From Dimorphilus gyrociliatus (lineage: Eukaryota; Animalia; Annelida): DNA of 64,000 bases. The stretch's first letter is position 1. Every line of letters begins with the position of its first letter. Both the position numbers and the translations under genes were made by a program. Shown piece by piece: positions 51,422-64,000 of the stretch. The notes beneath the pieces were generated by a model. That model was not told the origin of the DNA. It did not search any database and worked only from the letters and a program-made list of their open reading frames with translations. Location of the stretch: positions 124,001 to 188,000 of the forward strand of contig CAJFCJ010000031.1 in NCBI GenBank assembly GCA_904063045.1. Reading direction: 5' to 3'.

Positions 51422-54400
51422 ATGTCTTTAGTGACCGTAACAAGGTCTCCAACGCCGAACAATGTACCCCAATCTCCGTTTACCTTTACAGTTAGTAGAT
51501 TTCTTTTCTTTCCTACTCAATTAATAATTCTAATACTTATTTCTTTTTGTAAATAGAGAACTGCTCACTTCTCTCTTGATGATACAAATAAACATTCCAT
51601 TAGGTAGGTTAAATAACTTTTTCAAGTATTGATAATAACCATACAGTATATATGTATAGTTTCTTAATAATCCTATACTTGGCTAGACGACCTTTATTTG
51701 ACACTAATCAAGTTGACTGATGGGTTTTTTATATATATATATATATATATTCATTAGTTTATAATTAAGGCTTTATTTACTAAACAAACTTTTATTATTA
51801 TTATTATTTTTAAATTTAAAATAACCTATTTAAAACGTTAAATTATTTTTATTTAAATAATTCATTGTAAAGTTATGTTTTGATTATTATTTGTTGTTTT
51901 TTTTTATTTTATTTTATTTCTTTAACTATTTTCCTTAAAGGAACTCATTGAAAAGCGATAAAGTAATTTTAAATCTACCGTAAGTTTTAGGTGTAGTGTT
52001 TGTTGATGTAAACGACACTATAAATAATTTATAAATATATTATGTAATCATAGTTTTTTTTTGTTTCTTTTGATAAAAAGAAACAAAAAAGATTATTTGA
52101 AAAAAAAATTTTGTAATTTTGTTTTTTTTTTTTAAAAAAAATAACAAAAATAAAAACAAATTTTATAATCTTATCGGAAATTTTTGTAACTTGTAAGTTT
52201 CTTGTTGTGGCATTAATCATAATTTGTTTATTTTATACGGAATGTATGTACTTTGTTTTTACATATTAAACATGTTTATTTTGATTCGTTTTCTTTCTCT
52301 CATTTAGCCACAATTATGTCGCTTTGAAGGGAGCAGCTCTTATATTACCTTTATCGGAATGCGTTCATCGTAGAATTGATAGCAGCGGTAATTGTTATTT
52401 TTTTTTTCTATATCATTAATAATGATTTATTCCTTTTTTTTTATTTTGTTTTATTTAGAGAGCATTATCCATCATCATTTGCAAATGATTTGCGATCTAC
52501 TATGCTTAGACCATTGTTTAAAAATTGCTGTTCATTTAGAAAGCGCAAATGATAATCATATAAGATATATGGCTCTTGTTTCTCCTGAAGGAGAAGTACA
52601 GTTTGGTCCAGCGGCTGTTATTCTTGGTATTGATATTATCCCGTTTAAGGATGGGAGAGAAACCTGTGCTACTATCGGCCTTATACTTCCTTTATTTTGT
52701 GATATGGATGTGAGACTTTGTGAGGATGGGTTTGTATTTATTTACAGTATATATATATATATATATATATATTTAGTATATCATTGAAATGTTATATTTT
52801 ATGTTTAATAGTTATTTCGTTGTGGCATCGAACAATGAGCAGAATTTTTTTAAGCCGGTATCTGTTCAAGTGCTTTGGTCAGCTCTACAGAGCCTCTACG
52901 TATGTCAGGAAATGGCGAATAATCCGAAACACCTAAATAAATTGAATAGGTCGACTCGTCGAAGTAACGATTGGACCGCCGATTATAAAGTAAATTCTGT
53001 ATACGCCAATATTTCTGAATGGAATAAGAGTTGTGAGGATATTGAAATTAAATTTACATCGCCAATATACGATCTCCATAAATCGCCAACGGAACTCGAG
53101 ATGCAGCGAAAGATTGAAGGGGCTCTTAGAGAAATTATGGCGATTGTCGATTTAGAAGAGGTTACAACCGTTATGATTCGTGAGAAATTAGAAAAGAAAT
53201 TATCAATGAATTTACATTCTAGAAAGTCTTGGATTGATGAAAAAATTTTAGTTGTTTTAGAGCAGTTTAACTCTCCATCAACTATCCGTGATTATTTACT
53301 ATTAGGTTCGGAAGGTAACGCTTCAGATCTTAAAGAGTTGAAAAGGCAAAATGTTACACATATCCTTAATATAACGCGGGAGGTGGACAATTTTTATCCA
53401 AACCGTGAATTTGTATATATGAATATTCGTGTCGACGACGACGAAAATGCTTGGCTGCTCAACGAGTGGGATTCCACCAATGCTTTTATAAGTCAGGCTA
53501 AGGAACTTAATTCTAAAGTATTGGTACATTGTAAAATGGGAGTTTCCAGATCTGCAGCGACAGTTATTGCTCATCTTATGAAGTGCGAAGGTATGCGCCT
53601 AGATCAAGCCTTGAAAGACGTTAAAACTCGTCGACCAGTTATTAGACCAAATAGAAATTTTATGCGACAATTGAGTGAGTACGAGAATATATTGGAAGCA
53701 AGTGGTCAAAGAAGACGATTTAAAGTCGAAACTACATTCCAACTCTCCCCAATAGCCAATCGTTGTACTTTTAGTGATTGTAATACCAGATCTACACCTG
53801 ATTTAAGTATAAAGTGCAATGATAAATGTCCAAGGAGAGGAAGTTGCACTCCTCCAACTACTCCAAATTCTAAAAGAAAAATTGTTACCGACTCCGTTTA
53901 TTTTCCATTGAATAATTCTGATCAAAGGGACAATTTTGTCCGTTATAATTCGCGTGATAGAAATACACAATCTGGCGTTCATAGATCTCAAAGTATGAGA
54001 GAGAGAGGTGCCTATAGTAAAGTTGAACTTGAACGTTGGAGTGGTCAAGAGTATGAGGATTACGAACACTTGACTCCAGGTGTTATACAACGTCGTCTCA
54101 GAGCTCTAACGGAACCCGAAAGAAGATCTATCGAATCAGACACTCCTCCTGATAACAATGTAGTACGTCAAGGTTTCGTTCAACAACAAGCGCAAACGAT
54201 CGAACGCAGTACTCCACCCGAAACGCCAAAGCCAGTAAGAGCATCGGAACACAGAAGAGAGCAGCAAGAGATCGAATCCGACGAAGAGCAAGATCAAGAC
54301 CAAAAACATACTACGAACGGTATGAGCCAGAAAAATAATGTTGTTCCTAATCACAACGACGGTGAATGGCGAAAGAAAGTAGGTCAGGATAGAAACAGAG

Positions 54401-54768
54401 TCGAGGTTCGAGTTCAGATCAACCCTCATACTTTTATAGAGGCTAAACCTGCGTCTGAAGCTCACTGTAAAGTTTACGTACGAGGTCAGGCTCAGTCTTT
54501 GAAACAAAATCGCAATAGGACCAGAGCTCAGGCACGAGAGAAAATTCGTAACAGAGGTCGACAACAGGCTTCAGACAATTATTCGTCAGCCGAATCCTCG
54601 ATAGAGGAGTATGCCGATGCCGGCCCAAAACGATTTAATAGCTATAAGGACTGCGAGGACGACTCTGATATGGATTATACAAGTCCATTCCAATGGATGA
54701 AAGCGGAACAATTGGCCAGAATGAGGCGTGCTATTGCCAAAAATACTAGGAAAAAGACGGAATCGTAA
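51422..54768 (+). CDS. SSH: Protein phosphatase Slingshot (SSH-N, DEK_C, dual-specificity phosphatase domain)
   Basis: Start MSLVTVTRSPTP, ALKGAALIL, HHHLQMICDLL..KIAVHLES, FKPVSVQVLWSALQ, DEK_C helix, and intact catalytic loop VHCKMGVSRSAATVIA. Confidence 0.93.
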
Positions 54769-55363
54769 ATCTGATTGAGAGAAAAACAATAATAATGATA
54801 ATGATGAAGACGACGAACGACGATAAAAAGAGATTTATTGAACGTTTTTTTTGTCTTTTTTTTATCGATTCGTATTCTCTGTGTTTGTTGAAAAGAAGAG
54901 GAAAAGACTAACTTTTTTCTACGTAAGCAGCTTAATCTATGTTTTAAAGAAAAGGAACATACATTACATTTTTGTTATAGGTATATTGCTGCTGTTTATT
55001 TAAGTTTACATGATTAACAATTAAAATTCATTTGAGAGAATAAAGCAAGCTGATAACTAACAAATCTTGTTTATAATCTATATTTTCCTTTTAAGTGGAA
55101 GTTGTTTATTTTCATACAAAAATGGTTTATTAGTAAAAGTTGTATAAGATAATATGGAAATAAATGAATATATGTAAATATATATTTGATTATATACTTT
55201 TCTTTTCTTTTTTTTGTGTGCATATGACAAAATATTGTAAAGTAAGCAGCAAAAATCCGCCATTCCCCGCCTTTCTCTCCCCCCTCCCCCCTTGTAGCTG
55301 GTTGAGTAACGTTTAAACGAAAGATTCGTAGTAGTATCTCACAGTTTTCTGTGATTGGTTGGA

Positions 55364-58300
55364 ATGGCGTCCTCTACGGATGGTAATAGTCAGTTTTCTC
55401 CTGACATGTCCGAATTATCTGAGGAAGAAAGGCTGAAAGTCTTAGATGTACTCAAACGAGCCCAAGTTTGTCTTAATTCTAAATCCTTTATCAGCTATTT
55501 GCGTAATTTAAACAAAATCATTCCAATTTTCAACCGAAACTTTAATTCCAACTCAACTTTTTTAGGTCTTTCTTCATCAGGAAGAAAAGCATTCACTAAG
55601 GTATTAAAACTAAATTTTTGTGACATATTTTCAATTTAAAATCAAATATATCGATATAGACAACCACTTCAAGGACAGTTGTCTAAATATACAAATATGA
55701 TGAAAGGTTGGCAATATCGATATTTCGTTTTGGAACCTACTCCTGGGCGTTTATCTTACTTCGAGGTATAGTTTAAGATAACTAACGAAACCATTTACTT
55801 AATTGCAATATTAATGTTAACATTTAGAAAGAAGAGCATAAAACTACTCAAAGACCACGCGGATCAATTAACTTAACAGTAATTTAAATAGAATTGCAAG
55901 AATTTATATGAGAACTAATTTCCTTTGTAAAATACATTTAGAACGCCGTTGTATATCCATCGGAGGAAGATTATCAAACTTTTCATGTGAATGCATCTAA
56001 TGGAGTATCGTTTCAACTGAAAGGTTGGCGATGATAGATTATTAATCACAGATCTCGAATATAAATATTCAATTTTTCAGCCATTGATACAAAAGAACGA
56101 CAATGCTGGATCGATAGACTTCGAGCTACTGTTGAATATCATAATGAGATCTATCGAAAGAATAACGTAAGTAATAAAAAGAAACATTTTTTATTTAATC
56201 TAGTAAAAAATAATTAAAAAAAAAAGCTAACCACCGAGAATGCATTGTGGAATGAAGCGGCAAAAGCCGAACAAAAGTCCAATTCTACGCCTTGTCTACT
56301 TAGTCTATCAGACGAAATAAAAAATTCCTCCGATTCCGAGTCGACAAACACGTTAACGAGGTGAGGGGAAAAAATTATATATATAAAGTATATATATATA
56401 GATATATTAATAGTAAGTTATATAAAGAAGAATAAAAGCACTCTTATGCATTTATATTGCATGGTATTTGTAAAAGATATTCCTAGCTTTCTTTCGTGTA
56501 TCTGTGTTTATTGATAATTTGTAATTTTAGACACAAAAACAAAACAAACAAAATTATTAATATATTGTATGAGAAAACGTTAAAATTTTCCATACTTTTT
56601 GTTTGTCAATAATTTTTTCTTTTATTTTGTTTTTTTTTTAGTTAAATGTTGTTCCGTTTTTTTTTTCAATCACTAAATAATTAAAGGAAAAAGACACTTC
56701 GAAGCGAAATCGAAACAGAAGATTCTGATACTATAGCAACACCCCCAGTGTAAGTTTATCACCTCGTATAATTTAGATTAATAGAATAATTGCTAAAACT
56801 TTAAATAGATTTACATATTCTTTTCTCTCCTTCTTCTTCTTCTTCTTCTTCTCCTTTCTCGTTAATTAATTTTTTGAATTTTTGTTTACTATTTCCAAAT
56901 TATTTCTATTATAGTTTTACCAATTAAAATTTGCATAAGCTTATTCATTTTTTTCTTTTGTTTTCTTTCAATATAGAGAACCGGCAAATATTAATGATTG
57001 TACGACTTCTATTTCAACTTTAAACATGGTGGAAAGTTTTAAATCGGCTAAGGATATGCTCAATAATGTTAATCTGTTGAATAAGGCCTTAATTAAGGCG
57101 ACTGACGTAAATAGAATTTATAATTTCTATTATTTTATCAATTTTTTTTTACGCTTTTACGTGTTTGTTGCAGTTTTCACCTTCAATCTATGGATTATCT
57201 ATGTTTGATAAGGTAATAATACTCAAATATATCTATTACTTATCTTTATTACTAATATTCACAATATCCTATTGTTGACTGCAGGATCTACTTAATTTGA
57301 AAGCTATAAGTTCAGCTAACGTTAAATGTTTAGAGGACTGTTTTATGTCCCTTGTTGATTATAAGGTATATATATTTATATATATACTAATATATTTACT
57401 TAAGCATAGTTTTCTTTGTTTTATGTTTTACTATATATAATACAGGATGAATTGCTAAGAAATGCGGGGCAGCCTTCAAGACAAACGAAATGGTACTATC
57501 CACTTAATTCCAATCAGGAGTAAGTTGAAAAGATAATAATAATAACAATAATAATAATTTTAAAAAATTAAAAATAGGGGAGATGATCAAAGTACAGATA
57601 GTTTACTATTAATGGAACCAGCCGATTTTCGTACGTTTCTCCCTCATCTCTCTCTCAACATATAAATATTTTATATCATCTAATATATTTTATATAGAGG
57701 AAATTGAAGACGATAGCGAAGAGGATGAGAATATTGAAAGGGGATCGGAGAGCTCTTGTCCCGTTCCTGTTGATATTCTATCTAAGCTAAAGCTTGGTGC
57801 AGATCTTACTAAAGTAACCCTACCAGCTTATATACTTGACAAAAAATCCCTTCTAGAGATGTTTGCCGATTGTAATTCTAATCCTCAACTGTTTTTAGGG
57901 TAATATTTTTACGTTATTGTAACATATACTAAGAAATATATATATAAATACATTATCTATTTTAACTAGACGTTTATTTATATAACCATAATTGTAATTT
58001 ATAGTATCGCTGATGAGAAAACAGCTAGAGATCGTATGGAAGCTGTAGTTAAATGGTATTTAACAACTTTCAAGGGTGCTATTAAAAATGGAAAAATAAA
58101 CAAACCTTATAATCCGATTATTGGTGAAAATTTTCATTGTCAATGGTCGGTTGACAATACAACTTTATCGTTTACCGCCGAACAAGTGTCTCATCACCCA
58201 CCAATTAGCGCCTTTTTTATGGAAAGTAAACAAAAGCGTATTTCGTTGAATTCATCTGTTTGGACAAAAATATCGTTTCACGGAATGAGTGTAGGAATAT

Positions 58301-59099
58301 CATTAGTTGGAAATAGTAAGATGATAATTCTTTTTATAAAATCTATATCTTAGATGGGAATACACAGAATTTTGCTTTTGTTTATTCTTTTACAGTTAAG
58401 ATAAGATTGGATGAATTTGATGAAGAATATTTGTTGACATATCCTAGCATTTATGTTAAATCGCTACTTACAAATCCACTGATTGAACTGGGTGACAAAG
58501 TATCAATTAAATGTCCTAAATCAGGATATAATGCGACACTGGAATTTTCCACTCGAAATCAGGCAGAGGAAAGAGTCCATTTTGTTAATGGAGAAATACG
58601 TGAGCCGGAAAATTCGAATGTTATTATGAAAATCAATGGAGAATGGAAAAATAGTATAAAATTTGTAAAATTAGACGGTGACAATAAAGAATATATATTG
58701 GATCTCAAAGAAATTTCCACCTTTAAAAAGCGTGTTCGACCAATAGAGAGCCAAAATGACAAAGAATCGAGAAAAGTGTGGAGAGATATCACTCAGAGTT
58801 TAAGAAAGAATGATTTTGTTCAGGCGAATAAGCTAAAGACAAAGGTTAGCTTAGAGAATAATTTAAACGATACCATCTTGTTCCATTTATAACTGAGATT
58901 GATATTTTTTTTTACTTATTTTAGTTGGAAAATTCACAGAGAGCCAAAGATACTTCAAAATCATTTACGCCTAAAGTGAGTTTTAATTCTCTCTCTCTCT
59001 CTCTGTCAGTTGATCAATTGTTAATCTCTTTTGTATTATTCTTTCTAACAGTACTTTCAACATATTAAGGAAAAAGAATGGTTTTTCAAAAATTCTTGA
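55364..59099 (+). CDS. Oxysterol-binding protein-related protein, ORP10/11-like (PH + ORD)
   Basis: PH domain [47 protein letters not shown] has [24 protein letters not shown] and the EQVSHHPP fingerprint. Last exon 59052-59099 [15 protein letters not shown]. No FFAT motif seen. Confidence 0.9.
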
Positions 59100-61359
59100 G
59101 ATGCTACAATATATTAATAAACACATATATACAGACAAACGCAATACAAACACACACATACACACATACTCACACATGCAAGCACTCTCCATATACACCA
59201 GAAGAAGATATTGAAATGCTATTTTCTGCTCAACTGAATTGATCTGCAGACATTCAAATGGTTATGTTCATCTTTTTTTTTTTAAATTGGAGGATTAATA
59301 GAACTTAGGATTATCAAGATAGTTTATACAATTTACTTATGTTTACGTGTTTAATATAATATAATATACAATATATTGACAAACTTTTTTTTATGCATTT
59401 GTTTACTTATAAAAAATTTTGTACGTTATCAAGTTCATAATAAAATAGGCCATATTAATATTATAATATCTATAATAAATACTAAATTTTTAAAGAGAAG
59501 AATGGTTTTATTGTGTTATCTAATATGAAACCTATTGGTATAGATGACGCGGATTTCCCTTTCTCTTTTTTGCTCTCTTGATACTATACACTATCTCTTT
59601 TCGTCTGGAGAATTGTCTTAATCTGTTTCTTATCAGTTAAGGATATTTAAACGCGATAATTTATTGATATATCTAACACTTTTTTATGACCAATCTACCC
59701 AACCAATTGGATTATTATTACATCTATAAAGAATATGCGTCATTCGTAGGTACAGCTTTTAAATTTTGAGCGCTGAAACATTATTATATTCGTAATATTT
59801 ATAAAAACAATAATAAATAAACATTTCCAATCTTTAGGATATTTTTCACGTGTATAGGTATAGAAATGTCAAAAATTTAACGATAGATTATCATTAGATA
59901 CGAAAATGCGCTTCGACACTTTTTATACAATAGCAGACAAGTTTTTTTCATAGATTCTGGAGTAGGTGTTGTTTTCGATTAAATATTCCAGGCATTAACT
60001 TACATTTCAAAATTATTCATCAATTGTCGGTAAGTTATATTTTTAATTTATAAAATGAAATGTTGATTAATTTCCACGAATGGATTAATTTTACATACGA
60101 TGCATAAGAAAATTTACCTATATTCTTCTACCTCTTAGTTAGGCTATATTTTGTTGTTGTTTTTTTCAATTTATTTCCTCAAATTACTTGAGAAATTTGC
60201 AGAATTTAACTAGTATAAAACTTAAAATACTAAAAAAACTACATTTTATTTATGATAACCAACAAGTGAATAATATTGGAGGTCTAATGAAGGTGTTTAC
60301 ATACCATAATTACATCAATGATCTAAAATATTATTAACAATCAGCATTCTTTCATCAAGTAGATTTACGGTTAGACCAATAATAAATTAACTACGAGCGA
60401 TTATAATCGTAGAATGATTGACAGTGATTATTTACCTTACAACTATGGCCGAGTATTCTTTGTTTTGAGTTGAAAATATCAAAGTCCTTATCGTATTACT
60501 GGATAAAGAATGGTGTTATTGTTACATTTTCCTTAATTTGATTCCATTACGTTCTAACATTTACATAACTTGAGCATAAAACGATAAAAATATATAAAAT
60601 GCAATTCACCTGATTAAACAATTATAGCAATTAAAAAAAAACGCAATATCCATAAAGGATTGTTGTATTTTTGTTAAAATTTCGTAACTTATTTAATTCA
60701 TAAATTCAATTTTTTCAGGTACTTTATTTATTTATGAGAGGGGAATAAAAATCAATAGGAATCTATGTTTTCGTGTAAAAATAGTTGTATGACGGTTTAT
60801 ATTTGAATATCATTGTGCAGCGAAAAAAAAAAATAATATAGATTAACACCTTATACTCTCCTCTTTCTCTCTTCTAATAATCAGACAACTCTCCGGTGCC
60901 TTTTTTAGAATTTATTTAACGAGCTTTTTAGATTGGAATCCTAAGGCGATTAGTCATAGGAAAGAACTTTCATCATTGTCCTTTTTAGTACCATATAGGG
61001 CTAAGTTGGTAATCGCTACCACTTCAGCTTAGAGCCTCTCTCCCCGTAAATGCAACAAATATATTGAACAATATAGTAAGAGTATATCCTTGAACTTATA
61101 AAATACTTCCTTTACGACAATTTCTGTTCATAATAAATAAATATATGTCTATATATAAATTGCATTTATTATATACTATATTATGTTATAAGAAATATAT
61201 TGATTTTCAGTTAAAAAGCAGCTACTAGCGAATCTATGAACATAGTGAAATCCGAAAATCGAATAAATCATGGGTAAATATAGAAAAAATAATAAATTAC
61301 GAATATATGCTCTCAGTTAATATTTCATATATTTATTTGTATTAATTCTTTCTTTCCAG

Positions 61360-64000
61360 ATGAAAAGAAAGGAAAGGTATGATAAATTTTTTTTTTCGAC
61401 TTTTCTCCGTTGCTCTCTCACTCTCTCTTTCTTTCTTTCTCTCTCTCTACTTATAATATACCAACTATAAATATTTTACTGTCGTTTTATTCATATATAT
61501 ATATACATATTAATATATAACAAAAACAAACAAACGAAATTATATCATAATATATTGAAGAAGAAATTATTACTAAATTTCTTTAGTTTTTGTTCCGTTC
61601 GGCATCCGGAAACGAAGATGCTATAAATGTCATTAGAAGTTCGAGTTGTAGCTTCAACACAATCAGCGATGAAGATAAGGTTCTTTAAATATAATTATAT
61701 TTCCTTTTCTACATAATTTCGAAATGAACACACTTATACTATATATACTTTATATATAGTATATAAAATGCTTTGCTTCATCCGTAAGGCTTTTGAGAAC
61801 TTGTTAATTTTTCGTTCGGCTAATTATTTATTCAATTTTGTTTTCATATTTTTCAATTAAATATGATTAATTTTCAATTTTATTGATATTTTTTTTATGG
61901 GGCTTGTTTTTTATATTTTTTTTTTAAAAAAAATCAATTTTTAATATTTTATAGGAAACTATTCGCCAATTAGAAGCGAGACATATTCCCAAGAGGAGTT
62001 CGGATGAAGAGGATGAAGAAAACGTCATTAAAAAACTTGCTAAGCAGGTAACCTTGAAACAGTGTAATGAAGTCTTTATTAACTGATTTTGTCTGATTAT
62101 GAGTGTTATCTTTTTTTCCTTCTTCTCCGTAATTGCTTTTTATCAAAATTGTCTTTGTTTACAATTTTGATATATTTTTAAATATTTAACAGAATATAGG
62201 TGATATTTCTCCTCCTGCTTTACCATCTCAACCTCCTCCGATACCGCCCTCATCTCCTCCACCATTGGACGATAATCGTCCACCTTCCCTGTCTAAGGGA
62301 TTTTCACCGATGAATATCCCATCTGTTGATGAGGAAGAGGAACCGTCACCATATCGTAGTGGACCACCACCATTGGCCGATGAAGAAGTATTCTCAGAGG
62401 AGGAGGAACACAAGTTTGAAATAAAAGAATATCAGAAAAGTGAACAGAAATTTATTCCGGAAGATGTTGAAACTATGTCAAGAGTTATACACGATTTAGA
62501 GGAAAAAGATGTTGAAAAAGAGGAAATAATTGATGCATCGACGGTTGCCACAATTGATGATTCTGAAACACCTTCCATACGCGTTCAAGGATTGTCAGAT
62601 AACCAGAATGCTCAAGATGACGACAGACAGCACGATTTTGATGATGAAGATATAGTGGAAGATAATGACAGTTCGGCAGTTAAAACCGATGATGACGAAA
62701 GTGACGCTAATGCAGAGGATAACAAGGTTTAACCCAATTATCCCTTGATTAAGCTTTATCCTGTTTTTTTTAGCTTGAATAATTAGATGACCTCGTTATA
62801 TTTTCTTTTTATAATTAGCATCTTTATACACCAATATTTTTTATTTATTCTCTCTTCTCTTTCTTCCTCATTAAAGTTAAGAGATACGGTTGTAAATGGT
62901 AAACAAGGAGACAAAGTTCATGAAAATGGGCTAAAACTAGAGAAAGAACAGGAAAGAAAACAAGAAATTAACGAAGATATAGAAAAAGAAGAACTAACAA
63001 AAGAAAGAGAAGATTGCAAACTAAACAAAGAAGAAGAGAGCGAACAATTAGCAATTGATGAAACACAACAAAACGAAATGTCCAATCTATTGGATAAACC
63101 GGATTGTAAAGGAGAAAATGTTGTTCCCATGGAAACCAGTTTAAGTGAAGATAAGTGTTCAGAGTTATCAAATGTAAGGAATTTGCAACGATCATATAAC
63201 AATCAATCGTTAATACCGAAATAAATTCTTTTCTCACTCACTTTTCTCTTTATCAGAGCGACGTCAGCCAAGAAAAGAATGATCACGAACTAACCAGTAG
63301 TCGTGATGATGATTCTCACAACGGTAGCCTTGAAACTTCGTCTTGCCTCAATTCTACTGTGGAGGTTTGTTATCCTTTCTTTATCTATCTATCTATCTAT
63401 ATATCTATCTATTTATATATAGTATATCTTTATTTCTGTCTTTTTTTAAAACTGCCAAAACTCTCTTTATCTTTATACAAATCGAAGCAGCAATGATGTT
63501 CCGGTAGGGCGGTGTGCCTTATCTTTTCTATAGAACTAGAATCATTACTAATAATACTAGGTGTGAATGATATAATGCAGTAAGAATTTCATTTATTCCT
63601 ACTAAAAATAAATTAAAAAAATACGCTTTTCCTTCCTTTTTTTGCTGTGAATTTGAAGTATCATTCTCCTCTTGTATAATAATTCTTTCCTTTTTCAGTC
63701 TTCCAAGCAAGGAGACTCTTCCATTGATGATATAAAAGTCAGTATTTTGTTTCTTCTCTTAGCAAGATATTAAAGCTTTTTTTTCTTTTGCTTAAGATTA
63801 CTTCCCCATTATTGAATTTAACGGCTGAAAAGGCCAGAGCTTCATTGAGGTTACCTGGAAGGAAAAAACCTACCCGTGCCTCTGTTGCAACGGGTACCGT
63901 TTTTAGCACTGTTGATATAAATTTAAATGATAAGCTTCCCAAAACCGAAAACGATATCAAAGCTAATGGCCATGATAGTGAACCCGTTAAGAAACAGAAG
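61360..64000 (+). CDS. Partial multi-exon acidic/proline-rich protein with a CPI-like motif; 5' end unresolved, runs off the window
   Basis: Phase-consistent exons 61360-61376, 61587-61679, 61955-62047 and 62193-62727, plus further exons to 64000. Contains PPALPSQPPPIPP, long D/E tracts and LLNLTAEKARASLRLPGRKKPTR. Confidence 0.6.

Follow-up and report, generated by a model that had tools for sequence, protein, structure and literature searches.

ORP10 and ORP11 have been studied almost only in mammals, where they are placed on membranes by a weak phosphatidylinositol 4-phosphate (PI4P)-binding PH domain together with ORP9. Targeting of an ORP by a Rab protein is represented by ORP1L, which depends on Rab7 in addition to its PH domain, binds it through ankyrin repeats, i.e., through a fold unrelated to the one considered here, and has an FFAT motif of its own. 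Here, an ORP10/11-type gene of the annelid Dimorphilus gyrociliatus was analysed (forward strand, positions 55364–59099 of a 64,000-nt stretch of assembly GCA_904063045.1, contig CAJFCJ010000031.1, positions 124,001 to 188,000; henceforth called the window), the predicted product of which begins with a helix similar to helix 1 of the Rab-binding domain that rabphilin, Slp proteins, and melanophilin share.

Mammalian ORP10 (OSBPL10) and ORP11 (OSBPL11) have the same PH domain, the same linker with a conserved segment in the coil region, a lipid-transfer domain (ORD) with the fingerprint EQVSHHPP, and no FFAT motif (PMC11302984). Human ORP11, being without FFAT, reaches the endoplasmic reticulum (ER) via ORP9; its PH domain alone is only partly Golgi-targeting, and the ORP9-binding coils lie in the region linking PH domain and ORD (PMC11302984). 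The difference lies at the N-terminus, where the helix is present in the window protein and in most of its invertebrate orthologues but not in the retrieved vertebrate proteins.

The Rab-binding domain in question (Pfam FYVE_2, PF02318) occurs in rabphilin-3A, Noc2, RIM, Slp1-5, and Slac2-a/b/c (melanophilin, MyRIP). Its first helix, Slp-homology domain 1 (SHD1), packs on the switch/interswitch surface of Rab27, Rab3, and Rab8 according to the literature. The second element (SHD2) contributes a (S/G)GxWF motif, which fills the SF4 pocket of Rab27 or the CDR pocket of Rab3 (PMC8864489). The ORP helix shares with these proteins the L-S/T-x-E-E-capped amphipathic stripe of SHD1, comprising Glu, Ile/Leu/Val, Val, Arg, Ala (as in rabphilin), Leu/Phe, and Glu. 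In contrast to them, the ORP has helix 1 only, followed by a PH and a lipid-transfer domain instead of C2 domains or myosin-binding regions, and the two zinc fingers (eight Cys) that separate SHD1 from SHD2 in rabphilin, RIM, Noc2, Slp3-5, and Slac2 are found neither in Slp1/2 nor in the ORP. The SPIRE-box of the SPIRE actin nucleators, likened here by its published description, is likewise an SHD1-type helix in a different architecture and binds Rab27/Rab8 (bioRxiv 10.1101/314153; PMC11231147).

Similarity of the N-terminal helix to SHD1

Searches were performed with single exons of the window or with orthologous proteins as queries; within the gene region, positions 55200–57542 and 57580–59400 were used. 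In comparisons of orthologue helices with Pfam, FYVE_2 was the family matched most often (6 of 14 and then 13 of 32 helices, from many phyla), followed by ComX (5 of 32). The FYVE_2 matches always covered profile positions 1–36 of 118, i.e., helix 1, with the best ones obtained for Oscarella (E-value 6.5e-5, 23.5 bits) and Lamellibrachia (E-value 0.009). Profiles of the helix run against 177,635 PDB sequences gave only 18 matches, and these included three Rab effectors, each aligned at its N-terminal helix: melanophilin (2ZET, E-values 0.022–0.038), Slp2-a/Rab27A fusions (0.11–0.18), and rabphilin-3A (1ZBD, 0.5–1.2). With the Oscarella helix as a lone query, rabphilin was the top PDB match. 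A protein search with Pomacea residues 1–62 returned mollusc ORPs only and no Rab effectors, in a database the size of which renders short matches insignificant.

Three SHD1 helices scored 17–21 bits against the ORP helix profile, and none of 3000 shuffles of each reached the respective score. Window exon 1 scored 12.0 bits against a mini-profile built from three SHD1 sequences (0 of 5000 shuffles reached this value), and the same mini-profile, run over 156,003 residues from 272 ORP proteins, had 42 of its 45 top matches on the N-terminal helix. Alignment of the 32-sequence helix alignment to the three SHD1 helices by hhalign resulted in a probability of 95.9% (P = 6.5e-9, score 36.1 over 33 columns), while 200 column-shuffled control alignments scored 13.5 at most. 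The conserved positions of the ORP helix (L, S/T, an invariant Glu, Ile/Leu/Val, Val, Arg/Lys, Ala, Phe/Leu, and Glu) fall on conserved SHD1 positions, and its "RA" pair is that of rabphilin.

By these profile comparisons, the ORP helix shows a significant in-register similarity to the SHD1 helices of rabphilin, Slp, and melanophilin. The initial annotation, made from the letters of the window, had proposed a likeness to the first helix of the Rab-binding domain; with regard to these three effectors, the proposal was upheld by the profile tests and their shuffle controls, and checking the helix alignment against Rab-binding-domain profiles gave FYVE_2 as the top family along with the hhalign probability quoted above.

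Gene model and exon structure

The window region 55364–59099 (+) is a complete ORP10/11-type lipid-exchange gene: its PH domain is connected by a central linker to an ORD bearing the EQVSHHPP fingerprint, and FFAT is lacking. Exon boundaries downstream of the first PH-domain exon were read by eye and with tblastn using the Pomacea and Ptychodera orthologues. The exons are as follows:

55364–55465 (+), exon 1, 34 codons, with the ATG at 55364, a phase-0 end, and the donor GTTTGT; codes for a disordered N-terminal stretch followed by the initial 22 residues of the SHD1-like segment
55566–55600 (+), 35-nt micro-exon between the acceptor ttttag and the donor GTATTA; encodes 11 residues and the AG of an Arg codon, i.e., the C-terminal part of the helix and a short link to the PH domain
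55660–55765 (+), first PH-domain exon, which completes the Arg codon; weak matches to Pfam PH_8/PH and 66% identity (tblastn) to Ptychodera ORP11-like
55828–55878, 55942–56023, and 56081–56166 (+), three more PH-domain exons, colinear with the Pomacea and Ptychodera proteins
57282–57368 (+), linker exon with the conserved segment DLLxLKAxS...C(L/V)E(D/E)C, located by tblastn
about 56230–57540 (+), other linker exons, positions approximate
57698–57899, 58005–58315, 58396–58844, 58925–58975, and 59052–59099 (+), ORD exons, ending in the stop codon TGA at the gene end, 59099

The fingerprint is located in the ORD exon 58005–58315, and the ORD exons matched Pfam Oxysterol_BP at 2e-24 and 1.2e-14 (tblastn 1.7e-66). 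The PH-domain test for the ORP9/10/11 type was positive, with ...SEEDYQTF...KERQCW being spread across the exons between 55660 and 56166. The helix and PH region aligned with proteins named ORP11-like or ORP10; ORP9-like representatives begin directly at MEGPLSKWTN. The best named relatives were all annotated as "ORP11-like". Judged by these alignments, the nearest relatives of the window gene are ORP10/11 and not ORP9 or other ORPs. An exhaustive HMMER search with an ORD exon retrieved no close relative (best matches 39–42% identity, none above 57%). No FFAT-like core was found in any forward frame of 55364–57542 and 57580–59110, in agreement with the lack of an own FFAT that had been assumed beforehand.

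The introns flanking the micro-exon are of the GT-AG type and measure 100 nt on the side of exon 1 and 59 nt on the side of the PH domain. The joined frame is colinear with orthologues, e.g., Trichuris ...RADVFKKLEELDLMRQPLEGQL. In the annotated orthologue of another annelid, Lamellibrachia satsuma, exon 1 likewise ends in phase 0 (after ...RAK, where the window has RAQ), the micro-exon is exactly 35 nt long (L001:5384-5418) with phase and position as in the window, the PH exon begins A|CAACCACTG, and the overall exon structure equals that of the window. Isoform pairs of Ptychodera and of the spider Parasteatoda split exactly at the boundary between exon 1 and micro-exon. Taken together, there is strong comparative evidence that exon 1, micro-exon, and PH exon join in frame via GT-AG introns, as had been proposed for the link from exon 1 through 55566–55600 to 55660; the coordinates proved exact, and the Lamellibrachia gene has the same structure. 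A single amphioxus exon covers the helix, the micro-exon-like part, and the beginning of the PH domain, and the micro-exon and its introns are therefore not universal.

Together, exon 1 and the micro-exon specify an amphipathic helix of about 26 residues, which precedes the PH domain by a few residues. In the AlphaFold2 model of the Pomacea orthologue, the helix spans residues 21–46 at a per-residue confidence (pLDDT) of 72–79, and strand 1 of the PH domain, which is modelled at a pLDDT above 93, starts three residues later.

Distribution of the helix across animals

The spread of the helix was surveyed in full-length ORP10/11-like representatives, by name look-ups, and by a second search, and proteins were scored with the hidden Markov model of the helix. 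Exon 1 of the window is 54% identical to the Pomacea helix. The combination of helix, PH domain, and ORD was found in a sponge (Oscarella), a placozoan (Trichoplax sp. H2), cnidarians (Nematostella, Oculina, Dendronephthya, Hydractinia), many molluscs, the annelid Lamellibrachia, the nemertean Tubulanus, the brachiopod Lingula, the flatworm Macrostomum (schistosomes having partial forms), the nematode Trichuris, chelicerates (Ixodes, Parasteatoda, Pycnogonum), echinoderms (Anneissia, Amphiura), hemichordates, and amphioxus. It was absent from the retrieved insect, crustacean, myriapod, tunicate, lamprey, hagfish, and fish proteins; the retrieved ORP10-like proteins of fish and the ORP11 proteins of hagfish and lamprey have different, helix-less N-termini.

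As scored by the helix profile, the helix characterises the ORP10/11 family of non-vertebrate animals as a whole, and the window gene is an ordinary orthologue. A lineage-specific acquisition of exon 1 was considered and is ruled out by the occurrence of the helix in ORP10/11-like proteins from sponge to amphioxus. The initial annotation had spoken of an ORP that newly acquired a docking helix; this part had to be given up, since the helix spans sponges to amphioxus and looks ancestral, while the retrieved vertebrate and insect proteins are without it. The survey of ORP N-termini across metazoans that had been suggested together with this idea thus revealed a widespread helix, and not a feature particular to the Dimorphilus genome.

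In Littorina, Octopus, Lineus, Owenia, Aplysia, and others, isoforms exist that have a different first exon and retain the micro-exon-like part. In many species, isoform pairs (P0002/P0176, P0022/P0173, P0093/P0167; also P0196, P0203, P0205, P0220) differ only in the first coding exon, which provides either the SHD1-like core or an unrelated short N-terminus, with the EF-E--EE micro-exon-like segment being present in both. This suggests a conserved control of the helix by alternative promoters. The simplest reading of the distribution is that the helix was already present in the metazoan ancestor, came in many cases under the control of alternative first exons, and disappeared in Olfactores and Mandibulata, although gaps in the annotation of these two groups may contribute to its absence.

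As a separate observation, isoform X1 of Branchiostoma floridae (P0219, 784 residues; L002:1001-1300) has the PH start twice in tandem, the second copy reading QPYQGQLAKYTNLITGWQYRWF. This looks like mutually exclusive exons that were both included in one gene model, or like a real tandem exon duplication.

Proposed Rab docking and alternative explanations

The reading preferred here is that the helix is a minimal SHD1-type element that docks on Rab-GTP, with the PH domain reading PI4P; such binding is predicted from sequence similarity, at a probability of about 0.4–0.45. The helix would be an SHD1-derived docking element that recognises, on post-Golgi or secretory membranes containing PI4P, a Rab in its GTP form that belongs to the Rab3/8/27 group or is closely related to it, so that helix and PH domain would form a coincidence detector of Rab-GTP and PI4P. 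Anchorage to the ER for exchange of phosphatidylserine (PS) and PI4P would come from a partner of the ORP9 type, alternative first exons would turn the Rab dependence on or off, and the helix would have been lost in vertebrates, tunicates, and mandibulate arthropods. That SHD1 may act without the remainder of the domain is indicated by several published cases. SHD1 of melanophilin alone is reported to be sufficient for Rab27A-GTP binding in a passage of PMC9120966 that cites Fukuda 2002, JFC1/Slp1 binds Rab8A mainly through its SHD1 (PMC2018616), and residues 5–32 of Slp2-a alone pack on Rab27A at their own site when tethered (PMC8864489). The more far-reaching scenario, in which the ancestral animal ORP10/11 was a Rab effector with an SHD1-only helix docking the PS/PI4P exchanger on Rab3/8/27-type vesicles, toggled by first exons and later lost in vertebrates, tunicates, and insects, is doubtful at present.

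A number of observations weigh against Rab docking. Zinc fingers are absent (no CxxC pairs in any forward frame of 55364–57542 and 57580–59110), and so is the SHD2/WF element (no (S/G)GxWF motif in any forward frame of the gene), which agrees with the earlier statement that this half of the domain is missing; these are the elements that add affinity and Rab27 specificity. The equivalent of melanophilin R35, with the register taken from the PDB profile alignment and from hhalign, is His in the window micro-exon; most orthologues have Lys, Tyr, or a different residue there, and Arg was found only in Oscarella. In melanophilin, the exchanges R35W, R35F, and even R35K abolish Rab27A binding (PMC9120966). 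At the position of melanophilin D25, ORP helices have a nearly invariant Ala, and rabphilin likewise has Ala. On the side of the similarity itself, no helix reaches the gathering score of PF02318 (best 23.5 vs 27.2 bits), the PDB E-values of the Rab effectors overlap those of a few obvious chance matches, and the shared L-S/T-x-x-E pattern is in part a generic helix N-capping box. Window exon 1 as a lone query matched no Pfam family and gave one chance PDB match (E-value 1.1), because the peptide is too short for single-sequence searches. Moreover, the evidence for splicing of the Dimorphilus gyrociliatus gene is comparative only.

A helix that is related to SHD1 or convergent with it, and that no longer binds a Rab, would accommodate several of these points and is quite possible, if at less than even odds. 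It might regulate the PH domain, by autoinhibition or membrane sensing, or contact another partner such as a small GTPase or an ORP9-type protein. In the AlphaFold2 model of Pomacea it lies three residues from PH strand 1, at a pLDDT of only 72–79 vs more than 93 for the PH domain. The equivalent of R35 is not conserved, SHD2 and zinc fingers are gone, and the conserved positions form a heptad stripe that would fit any helix-helix or helix-domain contact. Yet Rab3/8/27 binding is the sole documented function of SHD1-type helices, the SPIRE-box included, and the invariant Glu as well as Val, Arg, and Ala all fall on positions that are conserved in SHD1; ORP9, moreover, is bound in human ORP11 via the coils between PH domain and ORD and not via the N-terminus. 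That the likeness is coincidental altogether, i.e., that a generic acidic, capped amphipathic helix was conserved in ORP10/11 for reasons unrelated to Rab effectors, appears unlikely. It would explain that the single-sequence E-values are all marginal except for Oscarella, that PDB chance matches of similar size occur (YVH1, dihydrodipicolinate synthase, and a designed peptide), that ComX and other unrelated Pfam families are matched by a few members, and that window exon 1 alone has no Pfam or PDB match. It would leave unexplained why 13 of the 32 members, representing many phyla, match FYVE_2 with a constant profile start, why three different Rab effectors are recovered in register, and why the shuffle and column-shuffle controls stay far under the real scores (hhalign P = 6.5e-9). 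A further alternative is that exon 1 stands outside the ORP transcript, as a chance open frame or as part of another transcript, with the protein starting at or after the micro-exon. Isoforms without the exon-1 helix in other species point in this direction; against it, exon 1 is 41–54% identical to orthologue N-termini, matches the Lamellibrachia exon in its MA start and in the phase and residue (RAQ/RAK) of its end, and is followed by GT-AG introns of only 100 and 59 nt, which provide no space for an alternative first exon before the PH exon, and this explanation is highly improbable.

Neighbouring features of the window

Upstream of the ORP gene lies an open frame of 659 codons (52789–54768, +), the product of which is a cofilin phosphatase of the slingshot type and combines PH_SSH1-like, DEK_C, and DSPc domains (Pfam DSPc 3.2e-35). 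The frame stops about 600 nt before the ORP start codon, and the true slingshot start probably lies in exons further upstream. Directly after the ORP stop codon, a CA-rich imperfect microsatellite (acacacacatacacacatactcaca...) begins (59100–59200), in the presumed 3' untranslated region. Downstream of the gene, two long open frames of 155 and 145 codons (62265–63224, +) are rich in Asp, Glu, and Ser and, by this composition, look like exons of a highly acidic protein.

Novelty and implications

Literature on ORPs with a Slp-homology, Rab-binding, or FYVE_2 domain, on invertebrate ORP9/10/11, and on the fly orthologue CG1513 with Rab was searched, and no description of the helix was found. Precomputed Pfam annotation of the orthologues lists PH and Oxysterol_BP only. 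The retrieved proteins of vertebrates and insects, the lineages of the characterised ORPs, are without the helix, which bears out the earlier remark that the architecture is unfamiliar from characterised ORPs; these have no known helix because vertebrates, tunicates, and insects appear to have lost it. What is new is thus the family-level architecture of SHD1-like helix, PH domain, and ORD, together with its phylogenetic pattern.

If the docking reading is true, the ORP helix would be the first case of an SHD1-type helix that occurs outside Rab-effector or SPIRE architectures and lacks the remainder of the Rab-binding domain. It would bear on the minimal size of a Rab-binding element, as no smaller version of the rabphilin/Slp Rab-binding domain is known, and SHD1 would be shown to work as a free-standing, transferable module. 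For the ORP family, the ancestral targeting of the lipid exchanger may have been coincidence detection of Rab and PI4P on secretory or post-Golgi carriers, a layer of Rab regulation that would be invisible in the usual models. Non-vesicular lipid exchange would thereby be tied directly to the Rab machinery of regulated secretion.

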